A stretch of DNA of 64,000 nucleotides from Epithemia pelagica (Eukaryota > Protista > Bacillariophyta). Under the pieces are notes generated by a model. It searched no databases. It was not told the origin of the DNA and was given only the letters and a program-made list of their open reading frames with translations. The stretch lies in NCBI GenBank assembly GCA_946965045.2, contig OX337236.1:2542001-2606000 (forward strand), given 5' to 3'. Made by a program: the position numbers and the translations under genes. How positions within the stretch are numbered: position 1 is the first letter of the stretch; every line of letters begins with the position of its first letter. This document shows positions 20,101 through 42,231 of this stretch, in pieces.

Positions 20101-20286
20101 GAACTCGACCCTACGGCAACATGTAGATGCTCAAACTTTTTCTTTAAGAAATCTCTGTCACCATTGGATTACCCCATGACACCCATCTATGACAAATCAC
20201 ATTGGATTCCACAGGCTATATCATTAAGGATGTGTGTTAAGGAAAAAGTTTGAGCATCTTCATGTTGGTTGGATATTGTCGAGTTC
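20101..20286. mobile_element. Putative MITE (186 bp), imperfect terminal inverted repeats, flanked by TA
   Basis: Outer arms GAACTCGAC / GTCGAGTTC; inner 31-bp arms 20117-20147 and 20237-20267 with 2 mismatches; no coding capacity. Confidence 0.6.
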
Positions 20287-20370
20287 TATCTAGTTGAAAC
20301 TATATGTCCAACGGTACATTTTCGCCCGTCATGGGCATACCCGGAGAGAAGGCACTCTAGGCGTGATAGG

Positions 20371-20660
20371 CATATTCGTCTAAAATTTCTGTTTTTGTTG
20401 TCTTACGTGGCTGTTTATCCAAATACTCCTTCGTCTCGCGATGGACTTTCTCACCTATGGTTGTTTGGACGTGTCATCTTAGTTGGTCGGTCATGTAGCT
20501 GTTGGCGTAAACTACGCATGAAGGGGGAAGATAGATATAGATATTGCCGTGAATGTTGTTGAGTGATGGAGGGTGTTCGAAAGTCACAAGCATATATCTC
20601 TCTCTATATATTATTCGTCTAAAATCTCTTTTTTTGTTGTCTTACGTGATGAGCTGTTTC
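20371..20660. repeat. ~240-bp tandem (satellite-like) repeat, left part, interrupted by Copia B
   Basis: TATTCGTCTAAAAT recurs ~240 bp apart; the unit continues at 47321-47750 and is duplicated at ~29294-29583. Confidence 0.85.
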
Positions 20661-20794
20661 TGTTGTGGCAAGATCAGGAAACGGTAGGACTCGACCAAAA
20701 GGCGACTGGCGAGAAGGCGAAAGAAGATGCAGATTGGATCTTGGTGAAGCGACGTGGCCAAAGAAAAGCAACGCAAACGAAACAAGAAGAAGCT
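20661..20794 (+). repeat. Duplicated left half of Copia B 5' LTR
   Basis: Matches 47111-47244; preceded by TSD GTTTC. Confidence 0.92.
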
Positions 20795-21200
20795 TTACCC
20801 CCAAAAAACTTTATATTCTCGATCTAATTTATTACTGCACTCTCCTAGGCCACATAATTTCCTTCACAAGAATGTGATTTCCAGATCAGCAAACTCGGGG
20901 CTGTGTAGTGTTTGCAACGCCTCCGCGCTATAAAATTTCCAAACTTGCTTTTTTGGTTCCCACCGTCCCCCCTGTAATTTGAGCACTTGTCGATGGCGGT
21001 AGGTATTTCCCGAAACGAAAAAAACTCCAGACGTATCGGCATCTTTTGCTGCATTCCCTGCCTTTTCGGGTGCAGATTTTATAACATTCTCCTGTTCTTT
21101 GAATTCTTTGTTTGGTTGCAGCGCAGATGTACCTCAAGCATCCCCAGAAAAACATATTATTTTATCTTAGCATGATACATTACCCCGACAGCGCCCGTGG

Positions 21201-22235
21201 CTAAATAGTTTCCAACGTGCGCCGATATATAGTCCACTGTTTCTCGGTGTCATCTCCCTTCCATTGAACAAATTCCGCGAATTCCGCCTTGTTTTTGACG
21301 TACACAGTCGTTTGCCATGTCGTGTTGTCAATTTTGGTGGCCCCCACTCGCGGCTGGAAGGCAGCGGCATCCACTGAGTTGAAGAATTCAAGCTTGACCA
21401 CAATGGCGTATCGATTGTCCTGGCTGGAAATGGTATAATCTGACATAGACGTCACAGATAGTTTCACAACGGACATATTGTCTGTATGGTTAAGACCATC
21501 TAACATTTGGTGAAGAGGCCATGAAGCTGCAACAATATTGTTTTCATTTCTTGCGACAGACTTGAACTTGGCTTTGTCTTTCAGATGACACTTGTACGGT
21601 TTATTCCTACCAACACACACATCAAGTGATTGATATATTGCAATCGGATCGTTGAAATCTACAGCCTCGGTGATGGGATTGCTGAGACGGTATGATTCCA
21701 GTTGATCAAGACCGTCGCAAGGAGACTCCGAGTCTGTTGGTTCGTAGTCCTGCAGGATGAACCGAGTAAGATCAGGCGGTTGGGACACTGGCAAAGGATC
21801 CCGAGGACTGATTTCGATTCCATCGAGATTCACCAAATGTCTGTGGATTTCCCAACCGTTCAAAGCCGTCTGAAACTCCGTGGCTGCCCTTCTATCATCG
21901 AAGTATGCCTTGACGGTTAGATCGTTGCCGTCGTAAACGACTTGCTTCGACTCTGCTGCAGAATAGCGAGCTCCATATTTTTCCAATAGCTTGTAGACAT
22001 TTCCCCTTGCTCCATGGGAATTCAAGGCATTCATAACTCGAGCAGTTACCTGATACACCGGCGGCCTCTGCAACTCGCGGATTTTTCGACGGAGTGTTCC
22101 TCTAATAGCCAACGTATTCTGTAGTCCGCAATACTCAATCAATTCCCTCTCATCGTTCTCCGTCCTCACATCGATAAGATCAATACCCAACTCCTCAGCT
22201 CCTCGTTTTAGACTGTTCAAGGTTCTGTCTCCCAT
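21201..22235 (-). CDS. 344-aa Crinkler/CR-effector-like protein with putative HNH-type nuclease C-terminus, copy 1
   Basis: Intact ORF with ACCACCATGG start context; QDY.PTDSESP, YQSLD, CH..DK and NENNI..ASW.LHQMLDGLN resemble Crinkler C-terminal HNH-like domains (from recall, not searched). Confidence 0.6.
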   Translation of the reverse strand: MGDRTLNSLKRGAEELGIDLIDVRTENDERELIEYCGLQNTLAIRGTLRRKIRELQRPPVYQVTARVMNALNSHGARGNVYKLLEKYGARYSAAESKQVVYDGNDLTVKAYFDDRRAATEFQTALNGWEIHRHLVNLDGIEISPRDPLPVSQPPDLTRFILQDYEPTDSESPCDGLDQLESYRLSNPITEAVDFNDPIAIYQSLDVCVGRNKPYKCHLKDKAKFKSVARNENNIVAASWPLHQMLDGLNHTDNMSVVKLSVTSMSDYTISSQDNRYAIVVKLEFFNSVDAAAFQPRVGATKIDNTTWQTTVYVKNKAEFAEFVQWKGDDTEKQWTIYRRTLETI

Positions 22236-22574
22236 GGTGGTTGCAACAATTGACTTTGAGGTGTAGACGCGTCTCTGTTGACGAAGCTTTTTCAGTGCTA
22301 GAATGAAAACAGAACAATTGGTATCGGACGATGGCCAGACGGATTTTCATAACCCGAACCCCAATGAAAAAATGCAACTCGCTGGGACAGCCAGTCAAGC
22401 TTCTCAGGACCAAGTCGCGTTGATGCTCGTGCACTCCAAGGCGAGACTGGGAAGCCGTGACCCTTAAGTCTAGTTTTGGAGGGTCGGTTCGGCTCCTATT
22501 CAGTCTGATTGGTGTTTAAAAAAAAAAAAAAGTAGTGTGGAACATTATTATTTTACGCGTCTCTCTAAAATGCC

Positions 22575-23339
22575 TTAAACATTCAGCTCTTCTAGCCACC
22601 GCGCCAATTCCTCAACCGTTTCGTCTGCTTGATTGTATAAGAGTTGCTCTTTGGCAGCATCAACTCCCAGTATTGTCTCCGCCTCGTTAGCCAGCTCGGG
22701 AGGCGGGGCAATGAGCGGAGCCGCATGCCAACCTTCCAGGGTAATTCGTTTCACGTCAGTTTCAACCATGGGTCGCTTCATACGGATGACTTGTCCCGCT
22801 GCTTTGAGCAATTCTTCAATATCTTCAGATTCGTCAAAGGGATCGTCCTTATACTGTATCAGCAACGTACTTCTAGCTCTATAGGCACGTCGAGCAGCCG
22901 TATTCACTTCCTGCGGTGGAGGCATGAAATCTCGGGCACCATCGGCAACTTCCTCAATCAGCATTGGAATTTGGTTTATCGCATCCAGCACTTCAGTTGT
23001 TATTGGGATCACTTCAGAATTGGACATCATTACGTCTCTCGCTGGAGCGATTGCGGCTGTTATGGCATCACGAAGTGCCGTTGGAATGGACAATCCGCCA
23101 GCCTTGTCAAAATCCAACACGGACGGAATTATGAGCTTGGAAGCCTTGGAAAGTAAATCATCTGGCGGCACTTCTCCTCTTGCCGCTACTTTGGCAAGTT
23201 CCACGCACACTGGTATCACGTCACTCGCGCCCTTCCTGTTGGGGTCGCCGCGAGCCGCCGCGTAGGTAAAAAAGGGGGCAAAAAATTCTTCAAAAAAGGG
23301 CACGGCTTCCGAAACGGGTTTGTTGTTGTACGAAATGAG
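22575..23339 (-). pseudogene. 5'-truncated DUF1350 (alpha/beta-hydrolase-like) gene fragment, copy 1
   Basis: LISYNNKPVSEAVPFFEEFF, F.PPPQEV, RAYRARSTLLIQYKDDPFDES and LEGWHAAPL; N-terminal half absent. Confidence 0.7.
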
Positions 23340-23401
23340 TAGGGTGGTCGGTTCTCTTCTCTCTTCATGATATATGATATATTCTTCATATTTATGTAGA
23401 G

Positions 23402-23756
23402 TGTTGAAGCACGAGGACCGACGGACGAACGATTCGGAAGCTTGTCATTCGGAAGCAATGCCGATTACGACTAAGACTAAACTTGTCCACCAGGGAGACA
23501 AGAAGTCAGACTGGAACGGCAGTAGCAATACAGATGGGGACACGAGTCAACCACAAGATAACAAGAAAGGAAAAGACATGGCCGGATCAGACGCCGGTGT
23601 TAATGCCTTTGGAATGACCACGACAAGAAGTTACAGGGACATTCTAATCGGAGAAGGTCGTGGAAGATCAAACTAAGACTAGATTAACGACGAGCTGAGA
23701 GAGCTCACTCTATAGCGAAAACAAAGTTTGTAAGGAGAAACAAGCGTGCCATTGCA
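23402..23756 (+). repeat. Copia A 5' LTR
   Basis: TGTTGAAGC...CCATTGCA, repeated at 28567-28921. Confidence 0.97.
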
Positions 23757-23803
23757 TAGGCTGAAGGCTGAGCAATTGGTTTCAACATTTTCGCTATAGA
23801 GCG

Positions 23804-24952
23804 ATGTCGAGTGACAGTAATGCTCCCTCTCCCCCAAGAGATGGTGGAAGCAGTGGCCGTGGAAATGGCCGTCCACGCTCCGGCCGAGGTGGCAGAGGTA
23901 ACCACTTCCGTACAGGCCGAAGAAATAATCAGTTTCAGAGAAGTCGCTTTGAAGGACGGGAGAAGGCGTTGGCGGGCCACATCTACGACTACAACGGGGA
24001 GAGAACCCCCGATAAGTACATACGTACTACCAAGGAGATTGCGAACTACGTTGGAAGAACGTTTACGAAATACCCAGGTGACTTCACAGCAGCGATAGAA
24101 ACGCTAGAACTCGATGACCCAGATGAACCAAATGATCCTGACCCAAATGATCAGGTGGCACTTGAACATTGGAAGTTGAACATCAAGGATCATCGTACCA
24201 AGATGCAAGAGTATGCAAACTTTCGAGCAAGTCTGTACAGCCTTGTGTTCGGACAATGTACAGACGCGATGCAAGAACGGCTTAAGTCGCATGAAGACTT
24301 TGAAGCCGCGAGCCAGGATGGGATTGCTCTACTGGTTATTGTGAGATCCCTCATCCATACGTTTGAGGAGAAGAGAAACCTAGCTGACTCGTTATGTGAC
24401 GTAAAAGAGAGCTTTTACAAACTTAGACAAGGTAAACACATGTCACTGGAGAAATATCACGAATTGTTCGTTGCTCAAGTCGCAGTCCTAGACGAGGTGG
24501 GCATTACCGTGTGGGATCAAGCACTGGTTGATAACATAGCTGAGAGCAATGGACGAGGTGATGAACCTGAAGAAGAGGACTATGAAGAAGCCAAACAACG
24601 CGCCTTGGCTATCCGGTTTATCCGGGGAACAAATGAGAACCACAAGGGTTATATTAAACATCTGCGGAACAGCCACTTGGACAATCACGACAACTACCCA
24701 AAGACAGTATCCGATGCTTTCAATATTCTTCAAAGGCGTGATGAAGACACAGTTGCCATCATTCCTGAGAATGATGGAGTGGCATTTGCGCAAACCTCGA
24801 CAAATGGGAGAGACATGAGCCAAGTCATCTGTTACAACTGCGGAGGAACAGGTCATTACGCAAGAGACTGTCCACACCAGCAGGGTCAAGAAGGAAACGG
24901 TAACAACAACAATGATGACAACAACAACAACGACGTGGATCCTTCTGGATAG
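23804..24952 (+). CDS. gag: Copia A Gag
   Basis: CCHC zinc knuckle CYNCGGTGHYARDC; CoDi-like LYSLVFGQCTDAMQERL. Confidence 0.92.
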   Translation: MSSDSNAPSPPRDGGSSGRGNGRPRSGRGGRGNHFRTGRRNNQFQRSRFEGREKALAGHIYDYNGERTPDKYIRTTKEIANYVGRTFTKYPGDFTAAIETLELDDPDEPNDPDPNDQVALEHWKLNIKDHRTKMQEYANFRASLYSLVFGQCTDAMQERLKSHEDFEAASQDGIALLVIVRSLIHTFEEKRNLADSLCDVKESFYKLRQGKHMSLEKYHELFVAQVAVLDEVGITVWDQALVDNIAESNGRGDEPEEEDYEEAKQRALAIRFIRGTNENHKGYIKHLRNSHLDNHDNYPKTVSDAFNILQRRDEDTVAIIPENDGVAFAQTSTNGRDMSQVICYNCGGTGHYARDCPHQQGQEGNGNNNNDDNNNNDVDPSG

Positions 24953-27900
24953 TCAGTCGACAGTGGATTGTTTCAGTAACAGAGCCTTGCTCAAGAATAT
25001 ACGTAAGACAGATATGAAGATTAATATATATTGCAATGCAGGAAGACGCACAATCGACATGGTTGGAGACTTGCAAGGATATGGTGAGGTGTGGCACGAC
25101 CCAAAAGGAATTGCAAATGTGCTGAGTCTCAGTCGGATCGGAAAGAAATATGGAAGGGTGGACTATGTGGCCAAGAAAAGCGGGGGCGAGTTCACTGTTT
25201 ATAAGCCAGACGGAAAAAGGCATATTTTCAAGGAAGCCGAGTCGGGACTACACTACCTAGACACTTCAAGCCCAAATGATGAGATGCATGATGATGGACA
25301 TATGTTGGTGGTGAATACAGTCAGGGACAATAAATCTAAATACACCAACAACGACTACATGAGAGCCCTTAGAGCACGAGAACTTCAAATCAAGATTGGA
25401 CGACCAAGTACAAGGGACTACATTAAAATTGTGGAAGGAAATTCCCTACCAAACTGTCCAGTCACAAGGGCCAATATATTGGCTGCAGAACATATTTTTG
25501 GGCCTGACATTGGAGCCCTGAAAGGAAAGACGACTCGAAGGCGACCGCCTATTGTGGACTCACCTGTAACACCTGTCCCGAATGTTATTCTGGAGAAGTA
25601 CAGACGTGTGACCATCTGTGTGGACGTGCTACATATCAACAACATCCCAATGCTAGCTAGCATTTCAAGAAACATCAAGTTTGGTACAGTTGAAGCCATG
25701 GCGAGTTTGAAAGAAGGCCCAATGTTGGAAGCAATCAAACACATCTGCCAGGTATATCGAAGAGCCGGCTTCAAGGTGGAATCGTCACTGATGGATGGCG
25801 CTTTCTCGTATTTGAAGGGCGCTCTAGCCGACATGGGGATCGCACTCAATGATACTTCAAGAGACGAACACGTTGGAGACGTGGAAAGATACATCAGGAC
25901 GATGAAGGAGCGGATTCGGGCAACTTACAATACACTACCGTTCAAGAAAATACCTGGGAGACTAGTTATCGAAATGGCAAAGTCGGCTGTGTTCTGGCTG
26001 AACGGGTTTCCTATTGCAAGTGGCGTATCTCAAGAGGCAAGTCCCAGAATGATCATTACAGGACAAAAGCTAGATTATAGCCGCCACTGCAAGTATCAAT
26101 TCGGGGAATACTGCCAAACACACGAAGAGCACGACAACTCTATGAACCCAAGGACGATTGGGGCACTCGCACTACGACCAACTGGAAACGCCCAAGGAAG
26201 TTATTATTTTCTCAGTCTTTCAACGGGACGAGTAATTAATCGACTACACGCAACTGCTCTACCTATGCCTGACGGTGTTATCGATCGGGTGCACAGGATG
26301 GCACGGCAACAAAAGGCAAACCCGGGTCTTGTGTTCGGGGACAGAAATAACCTGGCAAACATTCTTGATTTGGATGATGACGACGAAGACGATGACGACT
26401 TTTACCCCAACGAGATGGACGAAATAGTCGATGACGACGAGTATGACGATCCAGAGGATGAGATTGCTGACAATGAGGATGAAAACCAAGGAGTGTTGCC
26501 CGTGGTGGAGGAAGAGGAAAACCAAGGAGTGTTGCCCGTAATGGATGTAGCGGAAAATGAAGGAGTGCCACCAGTTGTCATGGAACTGGAGCCGGAGAAT
26601 GATGCTATGGACCCTATCGATGATGATGCCGACGTGGATGACGTGCCGATTGAAGAAGAACAGGAAGAGTGGTCCGTGAGCAATACGGACGAAAATAATG
26701 ACCCAGTGATGGCAGCGGCTGAAGAAGGTGATAACCAGTCTCATCATGATGAGGAGGAAAGTGGCAACCGTGAGAATGAAGGAAGATACAGCTTACGAAG
26801 CTGCAGAACACGAGACTATAGTTACAGATACAATCCTGAGGAGTTTGACACAAACGACCGAGAAAATGAGGACGAGGATGGTGCAGTCATGGCTGAAGTG
26901 GCAGGAGTTGAAGATACCGTGGAAACTCCCCAAATGTCCTTGAAGTTGGGGTTGAAAAAGTTCGGCGAAGAAGGATTGGACGCTGTTCGGAAAGAGATGA
27001 GACAGCTGCATGACAGAAAGGTTATGAGGCCGGTTGCGCGGTATAGCTTAACACCAAAACAACGAAGAGATGCGCTGGCCTATCTTATGTTCCTGAAAAG
27101 GAAGAGAACAGGCAAAGTAAAGGGTCGCGGATGCGCGGATGGGCGCAAACAGCGCGATTATATACCCAAAGAGGATTCGACGTCACCTACAGTAAAAACA
27201 GAGTCGGTTTTACTAACAGCCGCTATCGATGCCAAAGAAAAACGAGACGTTGCAGTGGTAGATGTCCCCGGGGCTTTTATGCAGGCAGATATGGACGACA
27301 TTGTTCACATCAGATTTACTGGGGAAATGCTAGAGATGTTACTGGAAATTGACCCATGCTATGCCCGCTACATCTGCTATGAACGAGGGGAGAAAGCGTT
27401 GTACGTGGTGTTGGACAAGGCCCTCTACGGTACTCTAAAGGCAGCTCGGCTATTTTGGGAGATGCTAAGCAAGCAACTGGTTGAATGGGGTTTTGTTGTG
27501 AACCCATACGACGAGTGTGTGGCGAATAAGGAGTGCAGTGGTGGCCAATTGACAGTCACCTGGCATGTGGACGATATCAAGGTTTCCCACAAGTCCAGCA
27601 CAGTCGTAGATCAGTTCATTCAACAAATGGAAGAAACCTTTGGGAAAGAAGGACCCCTAACCATATCACGAGGAAAAGTGCACGACTATCTTGGTATGAT
27701 ACTTGACTTTTCAGTGGAGGGGTCAGTGATTATCAGAATGGAGAGCTACATCAACAATATGATCAATGACATGCCCGAGGACATGATAGGAGTGGCATCA
27801 ACTCCAGCTTCCAGCAGTTTGTTCAAGGTGAACACGAATGGTACACCAACTTTAAATCCCAAGAAGAAGGAAATTTTTGTACACCTTGTAATGCAAGCCC

Positions 27901-28841
27901 TATATCTCAGTCAGAGGGGTTGTCCTGATATCCGTACAGCAGTGTCGTTTCTGTGCGTGCGACTAACTTGCCCTGACGAAGATGATTACAGTAAACTCAG
28001 TCGAATGATGAAGTATCTACAAGGAACCCGGTCGCTTCCTCTAACTCTACGGGTAGAGGATGATGGAAAACTGCAATGGTGGATTGATGCTTCATATGCA
28101 GTGCACCCCAACATGAGAGGTCACACAGGAGCAACGATGTCTATGGGTAAAGGATCAGTTTTCAGTGGATCCTGGAAACAAAAGATGGTGACTCGTAGCT
28201 CGACTGAAAGTGAGGTTGTCGGCGTGCACGATGTTCTTCCACAGATATTGTGGACCAAAATGTTCTTAGAAGCGCAAGGGTTTTCCATCGCTGCAAATGT
28301 GCTGTACCAAGACAACTTAAGTGCTATACTTCTTGAGAAGAATGGACGTCAATCAAGCACGAAACGAACCAAACACATGCACTTACGTTATTTTTATATC
28401 ACCGACCAAGTAAAAAAAGGGGAAATATCAATCGAACACTGTCCCACCAAGGACATGATAGCGGATTTCTTTACAAAGCCTCTTCAAGGACACCTGTTTC
28501 ACAAGTTGCGGAACCTCGTAATGGGAATGGATCCACCAACTGACCAGATGGAGGACCCAAGGAGTGTGTTGAAGCACGAGGACCGACGGACGAACGATTC
28601 GGAAGCTGGTCATTCGGAAGCAATGCCGATTACGACTAAGACTAAACTTGTCCACCAGGGAGACAAGAAGTCATACTGGAACGGCAGTAGCAATACAGAT
28701 GGGGACACGAGTCAACCACAAGATAACAAGAAAGGAAAAGACATGGCCGGATCAGACGCCGGTGTTAATGCCTTTGGAATGACCACGACAAGAAGTTACA
28801 GGGACATTCTAATCGGAGAAGGTCGTGGAAGATCAAACTAA
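24912..28841 (+). CDS. pol: Copia A Pol (protease, integrase, RT, RNase H), +1 frame relative to Gag
   Basis: PR LLDSQST; IN DDE (CVDVLH, MDGAF, HVGDVERYIR); RT KGRGCADG and WHVDD; RH DASYA, STESE and QDN. Reads into the 3' LTR. Confidence 0.96.
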   Translation: MMTTTTTTWILLDSQSTVDCFSNRALLKNIRKTDMKINIYCNAGRRTIDMVGDLQGYGEVWHDPKGIANVLSLSRIGKKYGRVDYVAKKSGGEFTVYKPDGKRHIFKEAESGLHYLDTSSPNDEMHDDGHMLVVNTVRDNKSKYTNNDYMRALRARELQIKIGRPSTRDYIKIVEGNSLPNCPVTRANILAAEHIFGPDIGALKGKTTRRRPPIVDSPVTPVPNVILEKYRRVTICVDVLHINNIPMLASISRNIKFGTVEAMASLKEGPMLEAIKHICQVYRRAGFKVESSLMDGAFSYLKGALADMGIALNDTSRDEHVGDVERYIRTMKERIRATYNTLPFKKIPGRLVIEMAKSAVFWLNGFPIASGVSQEASPRMIITGQKLDYSRHCKYQFGEYCQTHEEHDNSMNPRTIGALALRPTGNAQGSYYFLSLSTGRVINRLHATALPMPDGVIDRVHRMARQQKANPGLVFGDRNNLANILDLDDDDEDDDDFYPNEMDEIVDDDEYDDPEDEIADNEDENQGVLPVVEEEENQGVLPVMDVAENEGVPPVVMELEPENDAMDPIDDDADVDDVPIEEEQEEWSVSNTDENNDPVMAAAEEGDNQSHHDEEESGNRENEGRYSLRSCRTRDYSYRYNPEEFDTNDRENEDEDGAVMAEVAGVEDTVETPQMSLKLGLKKFGEEGLDAVRKEMRQLHDRKVMRPVARYSLTPKQRRDALAYLMFLKRKRTGKVKGRGCADGRKQRDYIPKEDSTSPTVKTESVLLTAAIDAKEKRDVAVVDVPGAFMQADMDDIVHIRFTGEMLEMLLEIDPCYARYICYERGEKALYVVLDKALYGTLKAARLFWEMLSKQLVEWGFVVNPYDECVANKECSGGQLTVTWHVDDIKVSHKSSTVVDQFIQQMEETFGKEGPLTISRGKVHDYLGMILDFSVEGSVIIRMESYINNMINDMPEDMIGVASTPASSSLFKVNTNGTPTLNPKKKEIFVHLVMQALYLSQRGCPDIRTAVSFLCVRLTCPDEDDYSKLSRMMKYLQGTRSLPLTLRVEDDGKLQWWIDASYAVHPNMRGHTGATMSMGKGSVFSGSWKQKMVTRSSTESEVVGVHDVLPQILWTKMFLEAQGFSIAANVLYQDNLSAILLEKNGRQSSTKRTKHMHLRYFYITDQVKKGEISIEHCPTKDMIADFFTKPLQGHLFHKLRNLVMGMDPPTDQMEDPRSVLKHEDRRTNDSEAGHSEAMPITTKTKLVHQGDKKSYWNGSSNTDGDTSQPQDNKKGKDMAGSDAGVNAFGMTTTRSYRDILIGEGRGRSN

Positions 28842-28921
28842 GACTAGATTAACGACGAGCTGAGAGAGCTCACTCTATAGCGAAAACGAAGTTTGTAAGG
28901 AGAAACAAGCGTGCCATTGCA
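28567..28921 (+). repeat. Copia A 3' LTR
   Basis: Matches 23402-23756. Confidence 0.97.
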
Positions 28922-29023
28922 TACCCATTCCCGGGTGCTGCGATAATTTGCAGGTATTCTCTACCAAAGCACTGAATCTTTTCCGTACGAAACACTACAA
29001 GCGAGATTAACTTCATTTAGCTA

Positions 29024-29209
29024 GAACTCGACCCTACGGCAACATGTAGATGCTCAAACTTTTTCTTTAAGAAATCTCTGTCACCATTGGATTACCCCAT
29101 GACACCCATCTATGACAAATCACATTGGATTCCACAGGCTATATCATTAAGGATGTGTGTTAAGGAAAAAGTTTGAGCATCTTCATGTTGGTTGGATATT
29201 GTCGAGTTC
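29024..29209. mobile_element. Putative MITE, duplicated copy
   Basis: Same sequence as 20101-20286. Confidence 0.6.
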
Positions 29210-30113
29210 TATCTAGTTGAAACTATATGTCCAACGGTACATTTTCGCCCGTCATGGGCATACCCGGAGAGAAGGCACTCTAGGCGTGATAGGCATATTC
29301 GTCTAAAATTTCTGTTTTTGTTGTCTTACGTGGCTGTTTATCCAAATACTCCTTCGTCTCGCGATGGACTTTCTCACCTATGGTTGTTTGGACGTGTCAT
29401 CTTAGTTGGTCGGTCATGTAGCTGTTGGCGTAAACTACGCATGAAGGGGGAAGATAGATATAGATATTGCCGTGAATGTTGTTGAGTGATGGAGGGTGTT
29501 CGAAAGTCACAAGCATATATCTCTCTCTATGTATTATTCGTCTAAAATCTCTTTTTTTGTTGTCTTACGTGATGAGCTGTTTCTGTTGTGGCAAGATCAG
29601 GAAACGGTAGGACTCGACCAAAAGGCGACTGGCGAGAAGGCGAAAGAAGATGCAGATTGGAGCGACGTGGCCAAAGAAAAGCAACGCAAACGAAACAAGA
29701 AGAAGCTTTACCCCCAAAAAACTTTATATTCTCGATCTAATTTATTACTGCACTCTCCTAGGCCACATAATTTCCTTCACAAGAATGTGATTTCCAGATC
29801 AGCAAACTCGGGGCTGTGTAGTGTTTGCAACGCCTCCGCGCTATAAAATTTCCAAACTTGCTTTTTTGGTTCCCACCGTCCCCCCTGTAATTTGAGCACT
29901 TGTCGATGGCGGTAGGTATTTCCCGAAACGAAAAAAACTCCAGACGTATCGGCATCTTTTGCTGCATTCCCTGCCTTTTCGGGTGCAGATTTTATAACAT
30001 TCTCCTGTTCTTTGAATTCTTTGTTTGGTTGCAGCGCAGATGTACCTCAAGCATCCCCAGAAAAACATATTATTTTATCTTAGCATGATACATTACCCCG
30101 ACAGCGCCCGTGG

Positions 30114-31148
30114 CTAAATAGTCTCCAACGTGCGCCGATATATAGTCCACTGTTTCTCGGTGTCATCTCCCTTCCATTGAACAAATTCCGCGAATTCCGC
30201 CTTGTTTTTGACGTACACAGTCGTTTGCCATGTCGTGTTGTCAATTTTGGTGGCCCCCACTCGCGGCTGGAAGGCAGCGGCATCCACTGAGTTGAAGAAT
30301 TCAAGCTTGACCACAATGGCGTATCGATTGTCCTGGCTGGAAATGGTATAATCTGACATAGACGTCACAGATAGTTTCACAACGGACATATTGTCTGTAT
30401 GGTTAAGACCATCTAACATTTGGTGAAGAGGCCATGAAGCTGCAACAATATTGTTTTCATTTCTTGCGACAGACTTGAACTTGGCTTTGTCTTTCAGATG
30501 ACACTTGTACGGTTTATTCCTACCAACACACACATCAAGTGATTGATATATTGCAATCGGATCGTTGAAATCTACAGCCTCGGTGATGGGATTGCTGAGA
30601 CGGTATGATTCCAGTTGATCAAGACCGTCGCAAGGAGACTCCGAGTCTGTTGGTTCGTAGTCCTGCAGGATGAACCGAGTAAGATCAGGCGGTTGGGACA
30701 CTGGCAAAGGATCCCGAGGACTGATTTCGATTCCATCGAGATTCACCAAATGTCTGTGGATTTCCCAACCGTTCAAAGCCGTCTGAAACTCCGTGGCTGC
30801 CCTTTCATCCTTGAAGTATGCCTTGACGGTTAGATCGTTGCCGTCGTAAACGACTTGCTTCGACTCTGCTGCAGAATAGCGAGCTCCATATTTTTCCAAT
30901 AGCTTGTAGACATTTCCCCTTGCTCCATGGGAATTCAAGGCATTCATAACTCGAGCAGTTACCTGATACACCGGCGGCCTCTGCAACTCGCGGATTTTTC
31001 GACGGAGTGTTCCTCTAATAGCCAACGTATTCTGTAGTCCGCAATACTCAATCAATTCCCTCTCATCGTTCTCCGTCCTCACATCGATAAGATCAATACC
31101 CAACTCCTCAGCTCCTCGTTTTAGACTGTTCAAGGTTCTGTCTCCCAT
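30114..31148 (-). CDS. 344-aa Crinkler/CR-effector-like protein with putative HNH-type nuclease C-terminus, copy 2
   Basis: Intact; differs from copy 1 at two residues (YFDDRR vs YFKDER). Confidence 0.6.
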   Translation of the reverse strand: MGDRTLNSLKRGAEELGIDLIDVRTENDERELIEYCGLQNTLAIRGTLRRKIRELQRPPVYQVTARVMNALNSHGARGNVYKLLEKYGARYSAAESKQVVYDGNDLTVKAYFKDERAATEFQTALNGWEIHRHLVNLDGIEISPRDPLPVSQPPDLTRFILQDYEPTDSESPCDGLDQLESYRLSNPITEAVDFNDPIAIYQSLDVCVGRNKPYKCHLKDKAKFKSVARNENNIVAASWPLHQMLDGLNHTDNMSVVKLSVTSMSDYTISSQDNRYAIVVKLEFFNSVDAAAFQPRVGATKIDNTTWQTTVYVKNKAEFAEFVQWKGDDTEKQWTIYRRTLETI

Positions 31149-31487
31149 GGTGGTTGCAACAATTGACTTTGAGGTGTAGACGCGTCTCTGTTGACGAAGC
31201 TTTTTCAGTGCTAGAATGAAAACAGAACAATTGGTATCGGACGATGGCCAGACGGATTTTCATAACCCGAACCCCAATGAAAAAATGCAACTCGCTGGGA
31301 CAGCCAGTCAAGCTTCTCAGGACCAAGTCGCGTTGATGCTCGTGCACTCCAAGGCGAGACTGGGAAGCCGTGACCCTTAAGTCTAGTTTTGGAGGGTCGG
31401 TTCGGCTCCTATTCAGTCTGATTGGTGTTTAAAAAAAAAAAAAAGTAGTGTGGAACATTATTATTTTACGCGTCTCTCTAAAATGCC

Positions 31488-32252
31488 TTAAACATTCAGC
31501 TCTTCTAGCCACCGCGCCAATTCCTCAACCGTTTCGTCTGCTTGTTTGTATAAGAGTTGCTCTTTGGCAGCATCAACTCCCAGTATTGTCTCCGCCTCGT
31601 TAGCCAGCTCGGGAGGCGGGGCAATGAGCGGAGCCGCATGCCAACCTTCCAGGGTAATTCGTTTCACGTCAGTTTCAACCATGGGTCGCTTCATACGGAT
31701 GACTTGTCCCGCTGCTTTGAGCAATTCTTCAACATCTTCAGATTTGTCAAAGGGATCGTCCTTATACTGTATCAGCAACGTACTTCTAGCTCTATAGGCA
31801 CGTCGAGCAGCCGTATTCACTTCCTGCGGTGGAGGCATGAAATCTCGGGCACCATCGGCAACTTCCTCAATCAGCATTGGAATTTGGTTTATCGCATCCA
31901 GCACTTCAGTTGTTATTGGGATCACTTCAGAATTGGACATCATTACGTCTCTCGCTGGAGCGATTGCGGCTGTTATGGCATCACGAAGTGCCGTTGGAAT
32001 GGACAATCCGCCAGCCTTGTCAAAATCCAACACGGACGGAATTATGAGCTTGGAAGCCTTCAAAAGTAAATCATCTGGCAGCACTTCTCCTCTTGCCGCT
32101 ACTTTGGCAAGTTCCACGCACACTGGTATCACGTCACTCGCGCCCTTCCTGTTGGGGTCGCCGCGAGCCGCCGCGTAGGTAAAAAAGGGGGCAAAAAATT
32201 CTTCAAAAAAGGGCACGGCTTCCGAAACGGGTTTGTTGTTGTACGAAATGAG
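31488..32252 (-). pseudogene. 5'-truncated DUF1350 gene fragment, copy 2
   Basis: As copy 1, with 5 amino-acid differences. Confidence 0.7.
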
Positions 32253-32397
32253 TAGGGTGGTCGATTCTCTTCTCTCTTCATGATATATGATATATTCTTC
32301 ATATTTATGTAGAGGGCGCTGAATCCATTTTTTTGTTTTTTGAGGGCTGTGCCCTCGCATTGATCCTAACATAAAATAAAGGTAACTTATGGTATGT

Positions 32398-32974
32398 TCA
32401 CATATGCTCACTATCTAGCAAGTCAGAAGTAAATTGTTTCCAAGCCTCGATAATGGATTCATCGTTGACAGATCCATTTGCTTCCCCCATAGACCACTCA
32501 AAAAAGCATCTATACCCACCTGGATACTCTGCCGCTCCTCTGATACGAGTAAATATTTTTAACCCTAATTTTTCGTACACTCCGTCCCTCACATTTTCGC
32601 AGCAAGTCTCTGACTTCTTTAGATAGACGTGGATCATATTGGTCTCTGGTACGGTTGGATTGAACGTCCCAACTTTAGAAAAGAGGGTTTCGGCTTTTAT
32701 CCTATATGTTATACGCTTCAGTTTGTCAAACCTATCTTGGAAGCTCATTATTGACCCTCCATGGCCGTGTACATGAATACGATACCGATGCCAACCTAAA
32801 GCTGCATATGGCAGTTTTGTATATAAATTTCCTCCAAATCTTGTGAGCCATGTACGTGCTTGGTTGCAAAATTCCTTTTCCCCCATTAGCATTGCTCCCG
32901 GGATTGAGCCCAGTCCTTTGTAAAACGATATATAAATAGAATCAAATGGACTAGCAAGTTCTGATAAGCTCTTG
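32398..32974 (-). pseudogene. 5'-truncated low-specificity L-threonine aldolase (PLP enzyme) fragment
   Basis: FDSIYISFYKGLG (PLP lysine), GAML.G..EF..QAR.WL.RFGGNL and ETNMIHVY; preceded by an intron-like pyrimidine tract and CAG; N-terminal half absent. Confidence 0.8.
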
Positions 32975-33162
32975 CTGCGCGTCAAAAAAGAGATGTTGAT
33001 ATTGAAATACAAGTGGCCGCCAAAAATTAGTCAATTTGAGAATACGTAGTTCGATAAGCCTATAAAGAGTTGCTTTTACGGCACGGCTTGTTTGAGTTTC
33101 AACATATTCTCCTTAGAAAATAACCATTACACTCACTCATCTTTTGCCGTGAACTACACTGC

Positions 33163-34707: not shown

Positions 34708-35459
34708 TGATAAACTTCTCTCGATTCAACAGGGTTTAGACAGATAGTTAGGATAGGTAAAAGGCTCGCTGAGCCGACAATCGAATCACCAACCGATACA
34801 ACAATCCTCCACGGGTCAGAGAAGAGTTGCAAGTCGAAGTCCGCCGTGGGTGGGGGCAGTCGGTCCACTGATAAGAGGTAAGTCTTAAGATGAGTGTTAA
34901 AATGGTGATATTAATGATTGTGAGACGATTACTAACTAAGGTGGTTGACGGTGCCGAAGTCCTGGCTCTTGCATACGGCCATGGATCTGGTGTGATAGGT
35001 CCTCACTGGTTGGAGTAGACCGGCATTGGTGTATATTGAATGTATAGGGTGATGGATAACATGTATGGGATGCAACAGCTCTTGCTTTGTCGTGGTATAA
35101 GTCTTGTCCTGGGCGCGTTGCTGTTTGCATTCTTGGATTTGTGGGAACAGAGATATGGTCTCGCGTGATCGTGATTCGTGCTTTGATTACATAGACCGTT
35201 AGGTCGAATCGTGGATGCGCGTACTCGGATAGTAGAGGCGCGCACTTGATAGTTTTGGGCGCGCACGTGTTGGGCCATAGTTAATATCCGAGCGGTCGCC
35301 GATAACGCGTGCACTGCGAGCATGCCGTGGCCAAATTTATAGTTTCGCGAGCATGCCGACATTCTTTTCTCACTTTTAGGAAAATGTCATCGGATGCCAT
35401 AAAATACTAGCATCATTCGATGAGTTGTAGGTTTCGCCACCTAGTTTTCGGTGAGAATC

Positions 35460-38400
35460 CTAACACTCCCCACAATTCGTCGAATGAGGATTGTCAATTC
35501 CCTCATCACTTTCCTGGATTTTTCCTCTCCAGAATAACAAAGATCTGAGCATGGGCCAAACTGCGGCGAATTCCCAATGTTTACTGAGGATATCAGCTGG
35601 GTTTGTCTTTCCATCTTTCCAGTAGAATGCGACGTACTTTGCAGCGATAGCTTCACGGACTCGGTGATAGGATAGGAGATGGTGCCTCTTGGAGATGATT
35701 GAGTGTGGTGTGGTGCTATTGATAACGACAGAGCGGTTATCTCCAAACATGTAACTCTTCTCTCGCAGAGGGACTCCCAAGTATCGGAGTGTAAGGCGTA
35801 GCTCCGTGATCTGATCAACTGCAGTCCTTGCGGCAACAAATTCAGATCCATACGTGGCTGTTTCCACTGTGGCTTGTCGCTTACTGTACCAGTCCACGGG
35901 TGTACCATTTACAAAATGCAGGATGGCTGTAACTGCTTTCCCAGTAACAATATCATGCATGAGATTTGCGTCGACATAATGTATAGTTGTCACAAAACGC
36001 CCAAGTGGGGTTGGACAGTCCTCAGGGATACGTTCCTTGGCGTCCATGTATACAGTACGACTCCAATCGTATTCTTGGATAGGTAAAGCTGATAAATCTG
36101 GCTCCCCAGTGCGGAATCTGATAGACCCATCAGGAAATGACATGAGGTATCCATAGATGCGCTTAGCTCGCTTCAAATGACCAATCCTTGGAGCAGCTCT
36201 GAACCTTGATAGAGTCATGGTAGCAGGAAAGACATCAAAACGGCCAATGGTAATTAGCCATTGCAGTTGTCCAATAAGAGTCTGGAAATGCTGGGTCCCT
36301 TCTTCATCTAAGAGCTCAGAGTCATCGAGTTCAGGATGATCGTTAGCAATGACTGGCGGCTTTGCTTTCTTGGGTTTCTCATTGAACAATCGTTCATAGG
36401 TATCCATCATCTTCTCGATGTACCTTCGTGGGTCAGACACAAGTGTACCGTCTGGATCTTTGGTATAACGACACCCCAAATGATACTCGATAGGTCCGAC
36501 TCCTTTGAGTTTGAAGTTGTATTTTTCTGTAAAGATCTTGCAGACAGCTTCAGGGTCCATGGCAACGATAGCTAAGTCATCAACATATACAGCGATATAT
36601 TCATAACAGTCTTCTCCAGGAGCTTTCTTCATCCAAATATCAGGGTCAGCCTTGCTTGGAGAAAATCCCATATCAATGAGAACATCAAACAGTTTGTCAT
36701 GCCAGCGAGCACCTGAGGATTTGAGACCATATAATGCCTTGTAGATGATCAAGATATGTCCTTCTAACTCCTTGAACTCTGGTCCTGCAATGATGAAAAT
36801 CTTCTCTCCTGTCAATGCTTCTAGGTATGCGTTCCCAATATCTGCTCCCCATATTTCCATGTCGTTCATGGTTCCAAGAAATATGGCAATGCAAAGGTTG
36901 CGAATGGAGACAACCCCTGAATAGATGGTCTCAACGGGTTCCTTGGTGAGATGTCCATCTGCGACAAGTCGTGCCTTGTGCCTTCCGTCATGCTTGACAT
37001 CAAAGACCAGATGTACTCTTATCTTATGATATCCTTCTGGTACATTGGCCAATTTCCCATTAATGAACTTGGCTTTTCAATGGTTCTTGAAAGTGTTATA
37101 CGATTGGAACTGTGAGAGTTCCAATTCTGTTGCGTCTTGCCATTTCGTGTTCCCAAACTGCTTGTCTAGTTCCACTGCTTCTTCATAGGTGCGAGGTACT
37201 TGGAAACCAAACTTGTACTTGATAGAGCGACGAACTTGTTTGATCCTGGATTGTTTAGCTGCTCGAATGAGTCTTTTGCTTGTCTTGACGTATCGCTTGA
37301 GATGTTTCCATCCAGGTAGATCCAGCAAACCATTTTTCTTGGCATAGATGGCGACTGTGATGGGGTCATCATTTGCAATAAGAGATAGAGGTTCGTATGT
37401 CGTCTCCCCAGTCTCCCAATCAACAAGGACATTATATTTACTCCCTTTATAGTCTGGGTCGCTTGAGTTCAAAGGTCCTTGGTGTGCAATAACGTCTCTG
37501 AATCGGAAGAGACTATCCCCTGTCGTTTGGGCTTGATTATCCCTTTCAATGTATTCCATGAGCTGGTTGTAGGAGATCATCTCATCAACATTGGAGTTAG
37601 ACTTGCGAAAGATGTATTTGAGTCGATCTTCTTGTTTGGTTGCATCTTGTTCCAGGTCGACAACTCGTTTGATTACTCGTGCTCGGTGGCGCTCCCCATT
37701 CTCTTCAGTGTCACAAAGGAATGTGCGTCCAACTAAATCGTCATAGTCAATTGTTGGCATAGGTGTGGATGGGTCTTCACTTCTGCTGCGAATAAAGACA
37801 GTGTCACCTTGCTTGTCAGTGGGTTTATGCGGCGACTCCTCCCCTGAAGAGATATCCACACGAAGGTTGGGGGTAGTGGAGGCAACGCGACGGACAGCGG
37901 AACGGTAGATGATGACGTTGTCGGCAGTGAGGATCTTCCAAGTAAAGGCATCACCAACATTGTGGGCAAAACCAACCCAGTGGCCAAGCTTCTCGTCGGG
38001 AGACGAAGGGTAAGAACCGGAGGTAGGTTCAGAAGGGTCGACACGATAGTAGACCTCATCCCAGAAAGGAAAGAAAAGGAGATGGGTAATGTCGGGTGGG
38101 GTACCGTTAAGAGCCTCAAGAGGGGTGCGGCCAGAGTGGGTGGGAGAGGAAGTGTGATTGAGGAGGTCACACACATATTCTAAACAAAGTAACCATGCAG
38201 AAGCAGGGCAACCAGAGGCATTCATGATAGCGTTGGTCATACGCTTAACGGTCTGGTAGCGGTTCTCAGCTTTGTTCTGGTGTTGATGATAGGGCTCGGA
38301 ACGGTATTCACCAATCAGAAGGGTGCGAAGAATATCCTTGACCTTGTGGGAAATAAGTGACGAACCACCATCACTGATCAAAGTCTCCATGACACCACGT

Positions 38401-41141
38401 GTACGAATGTTATCCTGGAGGGTATTGACGAATTGCTTGGTAGACTTGATACCATAAATGTCAGTAACCAAAGTATCACGACCAACAAAAATCTGAGCAA
38501 TCTTGCCACCATGGTTAACAGCCGGGGTGTCGGAGAAGATGGAGTCAGTGGCAACGGGTTCATGCCGTCGTGGTAAGTTAAGGATAGGATTCCGGGCCTT
38601 AAAATGTTTCTTCAAGGTATCCTGGTCAAAGGAAATGTGTCCATGACGAGTTGTATGCTTGAACGTATCTGCGATTACATCTTCCGATTGCCACCCAAAG
38701 AAAGGGCGAAATTTCTTCCAGTCGTATTGTTCCTTGTAGAGCTTGTGGACAGACGCATGAAGTGTGGGGTCGTTGCCATCTTGATCAGCATAGATGGAAA
38801 AGAAGGAAGGTGTATCGGGGCCATGATCATATGGGAGATCAAGGAGGAGATTCAAAGTGCATACAATGCGATCGGTATACTCCCCATATTGGTCATAGGG
38901 GTACGTTTCCATACTACCATCAGTCTCCACAGATGTCCAGTTCGGTGCAGGGTCTTGATGGGGGTCTGGATGGGTATGGTCAAGTACAGAAGGATCCCAG
39001 ATATGGGGTGAAGTGAACACAATATGCGGATATCTATCCATATCGTCATCAGAAGGGATTCCCAGAGATTGGATGTATGCAAGGCCATCCTTGATTCGTA
39101 AGGGCAATGCACGTCCATCAAGGGTAGTAATGCGTTGTTTGCCATCAACCTTGACGGATCGTTCGTCGACAGATAGGCCGAAATGTTCAAATTGCGCTGG
39201 GGCATGGATAGATAAACCCTTTCCATAGTGGGCATACTCATTGAAGATACCAATAATGGGTCCATCACTTGTATCAAACTTGGCAGCACAGGTAACAACT
39301 GGAAGGCCAGTCAATTCATGATTGTCAATACCTACGATGGTAATATGACGTCCGGTTTTGGCAAGGATGCGCATGTCAGATCCTGCAAGGCCTCCATTGG
39401 CACCTCGATCGATGAGTTGGTTACCAGAAAAGGTGGATTTGCGGGAGAATAGATACCGTGACATATGGACCTTTTGCTTGTGATCGGCAGAAGACTTGAA
39501 CTTGACTTTAGGACTTGACTTTGTCGTAGAAGTTGACAAGATGTTGCTGAGGTCAGATGCTGGATGATTGATATCTGTCGATGCAATAGCCTGGTGTACG
39601 AACTGGGTAACCGGATCAGAGGATGTATCGAATGGATCTTGTTCTGGTGCATCTTGATGGATATCACCAACGTTGTTGGCATCAGGATCAGGGTCCGGTT
39701 CAGGATCAATGTCAAGAGAATGTGTTTGGACCTTGCGTGGAGTTGTCGGGGAATCTTGGACGGATTTATTGAAGTCGACAATGATTTGCCGATCCTCTTC
39801 AGAGAGTTTAAACCATACATCTCTTGGAAGGCTGATTTTCGACGAAGTTGGGGACTTTTCAGATTGGATATTCGTGTTGTTGATCTGGTAGTCAGGGGGC
39901 TCCACTGGTTCAAAAGGTTCATCCAACTGAAATTCATGTTGCTTTACATGACGACGACGGTTAGACGCAGAAGTTCGGGTAGCTTGGTCATGGTCAAAAG
40001 CAGCATCAAGAAGCAGGCGGAAATATGATTGATAACAGAGAGACTTGGCTCCAGATTTTGTGTTGACAACGTTATCCAAGATCTTGACTCGTCTTAAATC
40101 AGGTACTTTTTCAACAGCTTGCATAAGGAAGGTCATCCTTGTATGGTCATGGATACGATCCGACAGTGGTACAAGGTTATCCAGAAGTCGTAGCTGTTCT
40201 TGGAAATGTAGGAGAAACTGACGAGTTGTACCACGCCAAGAGTCATCCAGTCGAAGATTCGAAATGTAGCTTGTTAGGCGTAACACTTCTCGCTTAGCTA
40301 GATCAGATTCAGTGTGTAGAACATGGAGTTTCTTCAAGACGGCTCTTGCATCTTCATCATGTTCATGTTCTCGAACGTATGCTCTTCCTTGGTCGGTTTG
40401 GATAATACGTACAAGTACAGAATAGACAAAGACTTGTTGTTCTCGGAAGAGTAACTCTGCGCATTCGTCATCCTTGGGTACCTTGTAATTGAAATCAAGA
40501 ACATTCGACAATCCTTGTGCTTTCGCAGTTGATTTGAATACACGCCAAAACGAATCAAAGTATCGTTCGTCTTTGAATGATTCAAATGCTGTTGCATCTC
40601 TTTTGGTTCCTTTCTTGAAAGCAGAGAGATCTAACATGGATTGAGATGTTGTAGAGGATGTAGTGGGAGATCGGGATGATACGGAGTGTGCAGGTGATTT
40701 CAGAGGAGAAACTAGGTCTTGGTTCATACCAGACTTGGTAAAGTCGGTGTTGATCCTCCAATCGTCATATTGGTCCCTCGTGAGGTTCATCCATGTAGCA
40801 CGGGGTAGTTTTCCATGTTGGAGTTGCCGTTGTTGTAGTAACCAATATGCCATTAGTTTGAGTTGTAATCTTGTACTTGTCTGTAGGTCGTTGACTTGCT
40901 TTCCAACCTTGTATTGCATGAGATCCTTGAGTGTCTCCTCAGGATCAGTTGCAACATGGTCGAGGACATGAAGGATATGTTCAAAACCATGATGTCGCAT
41001 CCACTTTTGAAGTGATTGGGCTCGTTCATCATTACAACCAAAGATGCCTTTAGTTATATGGTCGAAGAGATCTTGGTCGGTTATATGACTTGACTTGTCC
41101 TCAGGAGGAGTAAACGGTGTCTTGGGAGGTGTCGCTTCCAT
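35460..41141 (-). pseudogene. gag-pol: Copia C Gag-Pol, single frame with one internal TGA (37077-37079)
   Basis: PR IDRGANG; IN ATDSIF, ISDGG and QNKAENRY; chromodomain-like tail; RT KARLVADG and VYVDD; RH DANL, TYGSE and GDN. The 1354-aa and 530-aa ORFs are in frame (24 nt apart). Confidence 0.93.
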
Positions 41142-41475
41142 GATGTTATTTGGTTGGTTCGATGTTTATTTAATGTGCGGTGTGATGTGGTTTATTTAAT
41201 GTGTGATGTGATGTGAACCCGGATGTACCACGTGTGCCACGTATGTACCACGTATATGATACCCGGATGTGTGTTGTGATGTGCGACTCCTGGAAATTTC
41301 CGTTGATTCCGACAAAATTTCGCCGAGTTTCAACAAATTTTCGCCGAATTTTCGCGATTTGACGGGAATGTGTGGCGTGTTGTGCGACCAAGGGTACCCG
41401 GATGTGCGTTGAGTTTAAGTCTTGGACGGAACTCGGTCTTGTGTCTGGTTTGGTGTAGAAACTACGTAAAGTTAC

Positions 41476-42231
41476 TTATTCTTGGTCACTTTCGGCTCGG
41501 TACTGAAGACGAGATGCGGAATCGGTCACTGTAGTGGCTAGTTCTTCAACGTCGTCGTCTTCCAACAAGTGGTTCACGTGTTGAGTGAAGAGAGGGTAGA
41601 TAGTCGCACGAAAATCCTGGCAGAGATGGATCTCGTGAACAAAGGAGACGTACTCGTCGAGACGAGTAGTCGGAGTAGGTAGCGGATTCGTCGTCGAGTT
41701 GACGATCCAGATGGTGTGGAAGTAGTTGGTTGGACGTTCAAAGGAGATGAATCGAATACGGATGGGTTCCACAGGGTTGCCCAACAGGGCTTGGACAATG
41801 AAACGGCGTCTCGAGCACTGGTTCAAGAGGTCGAGAAGTCGTTGGATGTCCTCAAGGTCAGTCACGGGTTGGACGGACTGGAAATCGATCTCGCGTTCGG
41901 TTGTGGAACGGATCACGTCGGGGTCGGTAGTCGACTCAGTCGGCTCGCGGAAGTGTCGGATATGCGCAGTAAGAAGACGGCTCGTACGTCGGGTGCGAGT
42001 AGGGTTCAAACGGCGAGGCGGAGTCGAAGGTTGAGTCGGGATCGAAGGAGGCTGGACCACTTGGTCCGGGGTCTGGAAGGGATTCGGAGCACTGGCCTGA
42101 GTCGGGGTCGGTTTCGGAGTTTCAATCAAGGGCTCGCCCGGATGGGCCACGGGTGGATGGAGTTCCTCCCCGCTTTGTTGGAAGGAATGAAAGATGTGTC
42201 GAATAGAGAGGTTGGAATCGTCGTGTGACAT
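41476..42231 (-). CDS. Copia C extra upstream ORF (ORF0, ~251 aa), Pro/Thr-rich, function unknown
   Basis: Intact ORF between the PBS and gag, first ATG at 42231. Confidence 0.55.
   Translation of the reverse strand: MSHDDSNLSIRHIFHSFQQSGEELHPPVAHPGEPLIETPKPTPTQASAPNPFQTPDQVVQPPSIPTQPSTPPRRLNPTRTRRTSRLLTAHIRHFREPTESTTDPDVIRSTTEREIDFQSVQPVTDLEDIQRLLDLLNQCSRRRFIVQALLGNPVEPIRIRFISFERPTNYFHTIWIVNSTTNPLPTPTTRLDEYVSFVHEIHLCQDFRATIYPLFTQHVNHLLEDDDVEELATTVTDSASRLQYRAESDQE

Follow-up and report, generated by a model that had tools for sequence, protein, structure and literature searches.

The window analysed here is a 64,000-nt stretch of the genome of the diatom Epithemia pelagica (assembly GCA_946965045.2, contig OX337236.1, positions 2,542,001 to 2,606,000 of the forward strand), and positions below count from its first nucleotide. 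In it, the 5' long terminal repeat (LTR) of a retrotransposon, Copia B, is split by a 3,330-bp insert, which carries the 3' parts of two genes (a DUF1350 gene and a threonine-aldolase-like gene) and an intact gene for a 344-amino-acid (344-aa) protein. The insert is probably ectopic genomic DNA that was placed in the LTR by break repair, and a second non-homologous rearrangement involving another retrotransposon, Copia A, probably followed. The initial annotation of this stretch had left two explanations side by side, an unrecognised gene-capturing mobile unit built around a nuclease gene and multi-template filler from break repair, and our results fit the latter.

Copia B spans 29584-47320 and has the target-site duplication (TSD) GTTTC on both sides. 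The parts of the element that show what was interrupted are:
29579..29583, unstranded: left copy of the GTTTC TSD, read directly (the right copy is 47321-47325)
29584..29707, plus strand: left part of the Copia B 5' LTR, covering LTR positions 1-134 minus a private 10-bp deletion
33038..33104, plus strand: right part of the Copia B 5' LTR, LTR positions 144-210
47111..47320, plus strand: intact Copia B 3' LTR, 210 bp, TG...CA, which serves as the 'empty site'

Aligned with the 3' LTR, 29584-29707 corresponds to its first 134 nt minus the 10-bp deletion, and 33038-33104 is 100% identical to its last 67 nt. At the split (29707/33038) the insert lies between the two parts, and nine nucleotides (CATTCTAAG, 47245-47253 in the 3' LTR) are gone; the split, the loss and the 3.33 kb in between had all been read in this way before, and comparison with the whole 3' LTR confirms them. 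Copia B has the composition of a Copia-type element, i.e., a pair of LTRs bounded by TG...CA, a 5-bp TSD, and gag and RVT_2 pol in between. Because GTTTC is found on both sides and the two flanks together restore one unit of a local repeat (the same unit is intact at 47540-47640), Copia B represents a single ordinary integration. The other Copia B-family LTRs found in the genome (a 60.5-Mb, 23-contig assembly, which was used for all genome searches) are all whole, and none of them carries such an insert. Since Copia B has its TSD and a whole 3' LTR, and the other LTRs of the family are whole, the insert arrived after integration, as the initial annotation had held; and since these other LTRs are unbroken, the insertion site is not a recurrent one.

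From left to right, the insert is made up of the following parts:
29708..30113, minus strand: left end of the insert, the 406 bp that follow the 344-aa gene on its downstream side, unique in the genome except for a local duplicate
30114..31148, minus strand: 344-aa gene, intact; predicted N-terminal helices, ferredoxin-like middle domain and C-terminal HNH-like domain
31149..31487, unstranded: spacer from the DUF1350 stop to the ATG of the 344-aa gene, 339 bp, with an A15 run on the plus strand
31488..32280, minus strand: DUF1350 3' part, approximately residues 298-556 of the full-length protein P0216, no stops
32281..32327, unstranded: AT-rich junction stretch between the gene pieces, source not found in the genome, with the edge of a local duplication (32314/32315) inside it
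32328..32397, minus strand: DNA just past the aldolase stop, with an A-rich run (minus strand) at 32328-32341
32398..32973, minus strand: threonine-aldolase-like (Beta_elim_lyase) last exon, residues 245-435 of the 436-aa P0255, with the SFYKG lysine motif
32974..33037, minus strand: putative intron remnant at the right end of the insert, ending in the acceptor-like CTCTTTTTTGACGCGCAG

All three genes are encoded on the minus strand, and the open reading frames (ORFs) and Pfam matches bear out the earlier description of a co-oriented aldolase 3' fragment, DUF1350 3' fragment and intact gene. The ORF at 31488-32411 (minus strand) has a DUF1350 match (E 1.8e-10), and its homology to full-length proteins begins abruptly at residue ~45, near 32280; what is left is the final 47% of the gene. 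The full-length protein P0216, found in public data (ENA and Logan contigs), has 556 aa with the Pfam domain starting from residue 182. It is ~98% identical to the DUF1350 piece (3 and 4 residue differences from the two copies in the window, plus one single-residue gap, over ~255 residues), and its source is probably a close relative. The ORF at 32398-33012 (minus strand) matches positions 182-286 of the 288 positions of the Beta_elim_lyase profile (E 2.6e-6), and the piece covers residues 245-435 of P0255 (436 aa) with 71% identity. Homology starts at K14 of this ORF (~32973), and just upstream on the minus strand is CTCTTTTTTGACGCGCAG, a sequence shaped like a splice acceptor, and its phase fits the Gly codon of the relative. 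The intron remnant proposed in the initial annotation is therefore plausible as judged from the sequence, and in the public near-identical fragment P0245 comparable non-coding sequence seems to precede this point. Taken together, the aldolase piece seems to comprise an intron end, the terminal exon and ~70 nt past the stop, including an A-rich run that starts ~55 nt after the stop. The 339-bp spacer reads like a normal intergenic region, which suggests that DUF1350 and the 344-aa gene were neighbours in the donor. No tRNA or Rfam feature was found in the insert, and no hidden RNA gene or SINE (short interspersed nuclear element) at the A15 run.

Because of the intron-like remnant and the intergenic spacer, the source appears to be DNA rather than spliced mRNA. 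The insert also shows what break repair leaves behind: there is no TSD, the target has a small deletion, the insert is single copy, and its breakpoints are arbitrary (in the middle of an exon of DUF1350 and inside the apparent aldolase intron). As for the source of the junction filler, the 40-nt stretch at 32275-32314 matches the genome only at the two local copies, and the N-terminus of the DUF1350 parent is not encoded there.

We next consider whether the insert could be a non-autonomous gene-capturing transposon (Helitron-like, Pack-TIR-like or new) built around or moved by the HNH-like gene. As a mosaic of co-oriented, truncated host gene pieces with one intact nuclease-like gene, it does resemble Helitrons and Pack-type elements (Pack-MULE, Pack-CACTA). 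However, there are no terminal inverted repeats (TIRs) at its ends (the best internal inverted pairs are 10-17 nt, at chance level), and instead of a TSD there is the 9-nt target deletion, so that both hallmarks of Pack-TIR elements (MULE, CACTA, hAT-derived) are missing. The Helitron ends (TC...CTRR) are absent, too: the plus strand starts with TTACCCCC and ends with GTCAATTT, and the minus strand runs from AAATTGAC to GGGGGTAA. Helitrons have 5'-TC...CTRR-3' ends with a 3' subterminal hairpin and insert between A and T, whereas the insert has neither such ends nor the hairpin and its target lost CATTCTAAG. In this respect the initial annotation, which reported no TIR, TSD or TC...CTRR ends, was right. 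Helitron and Pack-TIR elements also come in several copies with common termini, whereas the genome-wide search for copies with the same termini that had been proposed, done at the DNA level with the insert and its three non-coding parts, returned only the locus itself and an adjacent local duplicate, which crosses the border of the insert (see below).

The family of the 344-aa gene, which is found in diatoms only, is relevant here: it has at least 14 loci in the genome, some of them 98-99% identical, which would favour a transposon. The nearest paralogue (85% amino-acid identity, on C6), however, shares with the gene only the ORF +/- 30 nt at the DNA level. Other members of the family lie in 1.3-1.85-kb patches that are 98-99% identical and end differently from copy to copy; since the ends vary, the pattern is that of copied pieces of DNA rather than of an element with fixed termini, and it points to recent, repeated copying of short gene-bearing pieces. 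With no other genome copies, no defined termini, the 9-nt loss and a duplicate that crosses the left edge of the insert, a gene-capturing mobile unit is very unlikely. Patches of a second subfamily of the 344-aa gene were seen at C4:2117356-2118231, C6:687751-688629 and C6:3568263-3569132, and also at C5:1420656-1421528 and C16:1995249-1996121.

Comparing the window with itself, we found that 19975-23401 and 28923-32314 are two copies of one block; the first of these had been missed by the initial annotation. The arrangement is:
19975..23401, unstranded: upstream block copy (U), with Copia B flank, left LTR half, 344-aa gene (21201-22235) and DUF1350 piece
23402..28922, plus strand: Copia A, exactly between the block copies, 5' end intact, 3' LTR without its last 29 nt, no TSD
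28923..32314, unstranded: downstream block copy (U'), which runs on into the aldolase piece

Besides ~0.7 kb of the upstream flank of Copia B, the block takes in the left half of the LTR and 2,607 bp from the left side of the insert; it ends at 32314, inside the 47-nt junction stretch. Over ~3.39 kb, its copies show 14 substitutions (0.41% divergence) and two indels, one of 25 bp and one of 10 bp, and the LTR half of U (20661-20794) is 100% identical to the Copia B 3' LTR. Because the duplicate crosses the left edge of the insert into the LTR and the flank, the duplicated unit is not the 'cassette'. Copia A marks a second non-integrase junction at the same locus. Its flanks (TAGAG and TACCC) do not match, and the end of its 3' LTR abuts the start of the second block copy, while clean copies of its family on C5 (961781-967368) and C17 (925296-930885) have 386-bp LTRs and 5-bp TSDs (GATTC and AGAAC). 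As 29 nt of the 386-bp 3' LTR are lost, a TSD is missing and the flanks are mismatched, the junction was not made by integrase. Possible routes are the bridging of two ends by free complementary DNA (cDNA), a half-completed integration, or a break in an integrated copy that was joined to a homologue without Copia A. Unequal crossing-over between two Copia A insertions was considered as the cause of the duplication and is unlikely, given ~3 close family copies and a 3' LTR that is truncated, not recombinant. Retrotransposon cDNA and retrotransposon elements are found at rearrangement junctions, as in the Ty1-associated rearrangements of yeast. Copia A resembles these in lying right where the two copies of a 3.39-kb tandem-type duplication meet, without a TSD and with one end eroded by 29 nt and the other intact, and it is a candidate case of retrotransposon cDNA or half-integration bridging two breaks.

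Could the duplication be an assembly artefact, in which two haplotypes were joined head to tail? A divergence of 0.41% with two indels is within the allelic range, and the junction between Copia A and the second copy lies inside a repeat (an LTR), a typical place for a contig end, so that the duplication and perhaps the odd junctions could have arisen in this way. On the other hand, the left LTR/insert junction is found in both copies, there are no Ns at the junction, and in another public assembly U-type and U'-type versions of both genes are on one 739-kb contig; P0001 from that assembly has amino-acid differences of its own. Because this contig encodes both types of gene copies, the duplication is not peculiar to the present assembly. 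We regard the local duplication as real and give an artefact hardly any weight; it could in any case account for the duplication only, not for the split LTR.

Several smaller observations concern the duplicated block. Between 21892-21899 and 30805-30812 there are four substitutions in 8 nt, which give KDER in one copy and DDRR in the other copy of the 344-aa protein; this cluster may reflect either a multi-nucleotide mutation or a short conversion tract, and both states are present in the other public assembly. Five of the six substitutions over the 242 codons shared by the DUF1350 copies are non-synonymous, which is what a dead fragment would be expected to show. In the flank part of the block, 20110-20356 and 29033-29279 are a fragment of a multicopy element. 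Across the genome this fragment is found in pairs of opposite orientation, much as in a DNA transposon or a MITE (miniature inverted-repeat transposable element) bounded by long terminal inverted repeats. The pol frame of Copia A (24912-28841) extends ~277 nt into the 3' LTR before its first stop.

The order of events at the locus is Copia B integration, the insert, the Copia A-associated duplication, and small indels. In the explanation we favour, the 5' LTR of Copia B would have broken some time after integration at LTR position 134/144, and non-homologous repair at the DNA level would have closed the break with the loss of 9 nt and the gain of 3.33 kb of ectopic chromosomal DNA. The patch would consist of two stretches: ~2.57 kb of contiguous DNA with the 406-bp downstream flank, the 344-aa gene, the 339-bp spacer and the 3' 47% of DUF1350, and ~0.7 kb with the intron end, last exon and immediate downstream DNA of the threonine-aldolase-like gene, linked by an AT-rich filler of ~47 nt. 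A single donor locus, copied with a skip, may have supplied both stretches. A second non-homologous event would later have duplicated 3.39 kb (the Copia B flank, the left LTR half and the first of the two stretches), leaving the 3'-truncated Copia A at the junction. The make-up of the locus, the sequence of events, the missing transposon hallmarks, the single copy and the lack of parents are shown by the data, while we infer which repair pathway acted and how many donor loci contributed. Four points weigh against this explanation. First, the donor is absent from the assembly, and microhomology at the junctions, copying versus cutting, and one versus two donors cannot be read from the locus. 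Second, simple copy-and-paste repair does not predict that the parents of all three genes are absent. Third, the left end of Copia A falls in the 47-nt junction zone, a coincidence of ~1-2% if sites are uniform, for which the explanation offers only chance or a bias towards AT-rich sequence. Fourth, the three genes are all antisense to Copia B and each piece includes the 3' end of a gene, which also fits the action of a reverse transcriptase.

This last point can be turned into an explanation of its own, namely template switching by reverse transcriptase during plus-strand strong-stop synthesis of Copia B, in which the enzyme would have left U3/R, copied packaged RNAs from their 3' ends and returned, giving an insert in the 5' LTR only. 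It alone predicts this restriction to the 5' LTR together with genes antisense to Copia B and pieces entered from their 3' ends, and each piece does begin at or near the 3' end of a gene and heads toward the 5' end. The A-rich run ~55 nt beyond the aldolase stop agrees with it as well. In addition, the 14 nt directly after the Copia B 5' LTR (TATTCTCCTTAGAA, 33105-33118) are the reverse complement of LTR positions ~137-150 (TTCTAAGGAGAATA, 47246-47260), and the insert break point is in the middle of this LTR stretch, which is complementary to the primer-binding position of Copia B. Nevertheless, the aldolase piece opens with an intron-like remnant, and DUF1350 and the 344-aa gene are linked by 339 bp that look intergenic. 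There is no poly(A)-derived T run (plus strand) at the left end of the insert, the run at the 3' end of DUF1350 has the wrong polarity (A15 on the plus strand), 9 nt of the LTR were lost, and no such insert is found in other Copia B-family LTRs. Gene capture by LTR retrotransposons through template switching is exemplified by maize Bs1. The insert resembles such captures in having host gene pieces inside an element, with an orientation and a 3'-end bias that fit copying by reverse transcriptase; it differs in being in one LTR only and not in other copies, and in its intron-like remnant, intergenic spacer and lack of the expected poly(A) traces. On balance, template switching seems improbable.

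The initial annotation had called for the intact parental aldolase and DUF1350 loci to be located. Neither is in the assembly: whole-genome DNA searches and six-frame protein searches with the fragments, P0216 and P0255 found no parent of any of the three insert genes, nor do the 5' halves that would complete the P0216-type and P0255-type genes occur anywhere in it. The best matches elsewhere in the genome are a DUF1350 paralogue with 47% (C5), aldolases with ~35-54% (C10) and a 344-aa gene with 85% (C6) amino-acid identity, so the pieces do not look like captured copies of resident genes. The parents are either on an unassembled haplotype, lost, or themselves the material that was moved. Given that the genes share one orientation, are spaced tail to head and all lack a parent, we favour a single donor locus that was copied, or re-ligated, with a skip.

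If the material was cut rather than copied, a native aldolase - DUF1350 - 344-aa locus would have been shattered, with some pieces re-ligated into the LTR and the rest lost (a small chromothripsis-like insertional translocation). This would explain why no parents are in the assembly and why the 5' halves of DUF1350 and the aldolase are nowhere to be found; a full-length DUF1350 protein ~98% identical to the piece exists in other public data, and the co-orientation fits one source locus. Yet no trace of an emptied locus was found in the genome, and the parents could equally sit on an unassembled haplotype. Five distant metagenome DUF1350 loci (51-60% identity to the fragment) have no 344-aa gene and no aldolase within 1.7-5.6 kb, though synteny may have decayed over such distances, and these loci are uninformative about close relatives. 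We consider cutting unlikely, while giving it some weight.

Near-identical aldolase and DUF1350 sequences are present in other public data, probably from close relatives, and protein relatives of the genes studied come almost only from pennate diatoms (a Bacillariaceae metagenome-assembled genome, Nitzschia, Cylindrotheca, Synedropsis and Amphora). The aldolase piece had been noted as more AT-rich than resident genes, with a hint at a different origin. The first part stands: its GC content at third codon positions is 0.38, compared to 0.47-0.53 in nine other ORFs, a shift that is real and modest in size (~3 binomial standard errors on 192 codons). The second part is weak, because near-identical sequences exist in data of probable close relatives, which leaves AT-richness as thin evidence for a foreign origin.

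The 344-aa protein itself had been called HNH/Crinkler-like. It has no Pfam match, and neither a sequence-profile search against PDB nor Foldseek gave anything significant. Its family has many relatives in diatom data, including ORFs of MMETSP transcripts, and an AlphaFold model built on 37 relatives (predicted local distance difference test score, pLDDT, 85.6) has helices at the N-terminus, followed by a ferredoxin-like middle domain at residues 58-160 and then a C-terminal domain. H217, N233 and H242 are invariant in the 37 members, and in the model the C-terminal unit comprises a strand (214-217), a second strand (234-237) and a helix (239-246), i.e., His...Asn...His on strand-strand-helix. 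Among the structural matches found, only two HNH restriction enzymes cover the C-terminal domain, VcaM4I (Z 7.5 over 109 aligned residues, root-mean-square deviation 3.6) and TagI (Z 6.7), and Z values of this size can also arise by chance. An HNH-type nuclease is a reasonable, not proven, assignment with modest support from the modelled structure, and this half of the earlier label holds to that extent. The Crinkler half does not: Crinkler (CRN) effectors have an N-terminal header for secretion and translocation, with an LxLFLAK-type motif and a ubiquitin-like domain, and a C-terminal toxin module, whereas the first 56 residues of the 344-aa protein are predicted to be helical, with no LFLAK-like motif and no Pfam family. 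The likeness is one of layout only, in that the possible HNH module resembles one type of Crinkler C-terminus.

A further idea is that the HNH-like family spreads via breaks made by its own product. The insert would then be a 'homing-like' patch without fixed termini, copied into a cut site from a locus with the nuclease gene, that dragged pieces of neighbouring genes along. We see this as a long shot. If true, such break-driven spread would be a new route of movement for a nuclear nuclease gene in a eukaryote.

Compared with known systems, a break-repair patch is a known kind of event. Filler DNA at repaired breaks has been described in the older plant and yeast literature, and the insert shares with it the missing TSD, the small deletion, the arbitrary breakpoints, more than one source stretch with short filler in between, and single-copy status. 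It differs in that a 3.3-kb patch is large, carries a whole open gene and has a donor that is missing from the genome. Mitochondrial DNA and retrotransposon cDNA are inserted at breaks by end joining, as described in PMC11372161.

The surroundings of the insert are a transposon island, in which host genes stop near 15.8 kb (DUF1295, ACBP) and restart at 47.9 kb. Copia B itself hosts a further element:
34708..43027, minus strand: nested LTR element C inside Copia B, 758-bp LTRs, TSD CCTGT

Element C entered Copia B at some point after the integration of Copia B, and its LTRs have 2 differences over ~759 positions. Minus the 3,330-bp insert and element C, Copia B measures 6,082 bp (the intact family copy on C5 has ~6,093 bp). 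The local tandem repeat, into one unit of which Copia B integrated, has a period of ~274 bp and is seen at 47332-47755 and at 20372-20660 / 29295-29583.

The locus offers a clean, datable record of how non-homologous repair probably rebuilt a gene-poor transposon island of a diatom, with the intact second LTR as a built-in 'before' picture of the target. On this reading, kilobase-sized patches with a whole open gene can relocate without transposon machinery, and the gene fragments they carry do not have to be copied from genes of the same genome (one parent is intact in the data of a probable close relative). For annotation, it is a warning that not every mosaic of gene fragments is a Helitron or a Pack element. 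The locus also indicates that a retrotransposon can occupy the junction of a tandem-type duplication without normal integration there.

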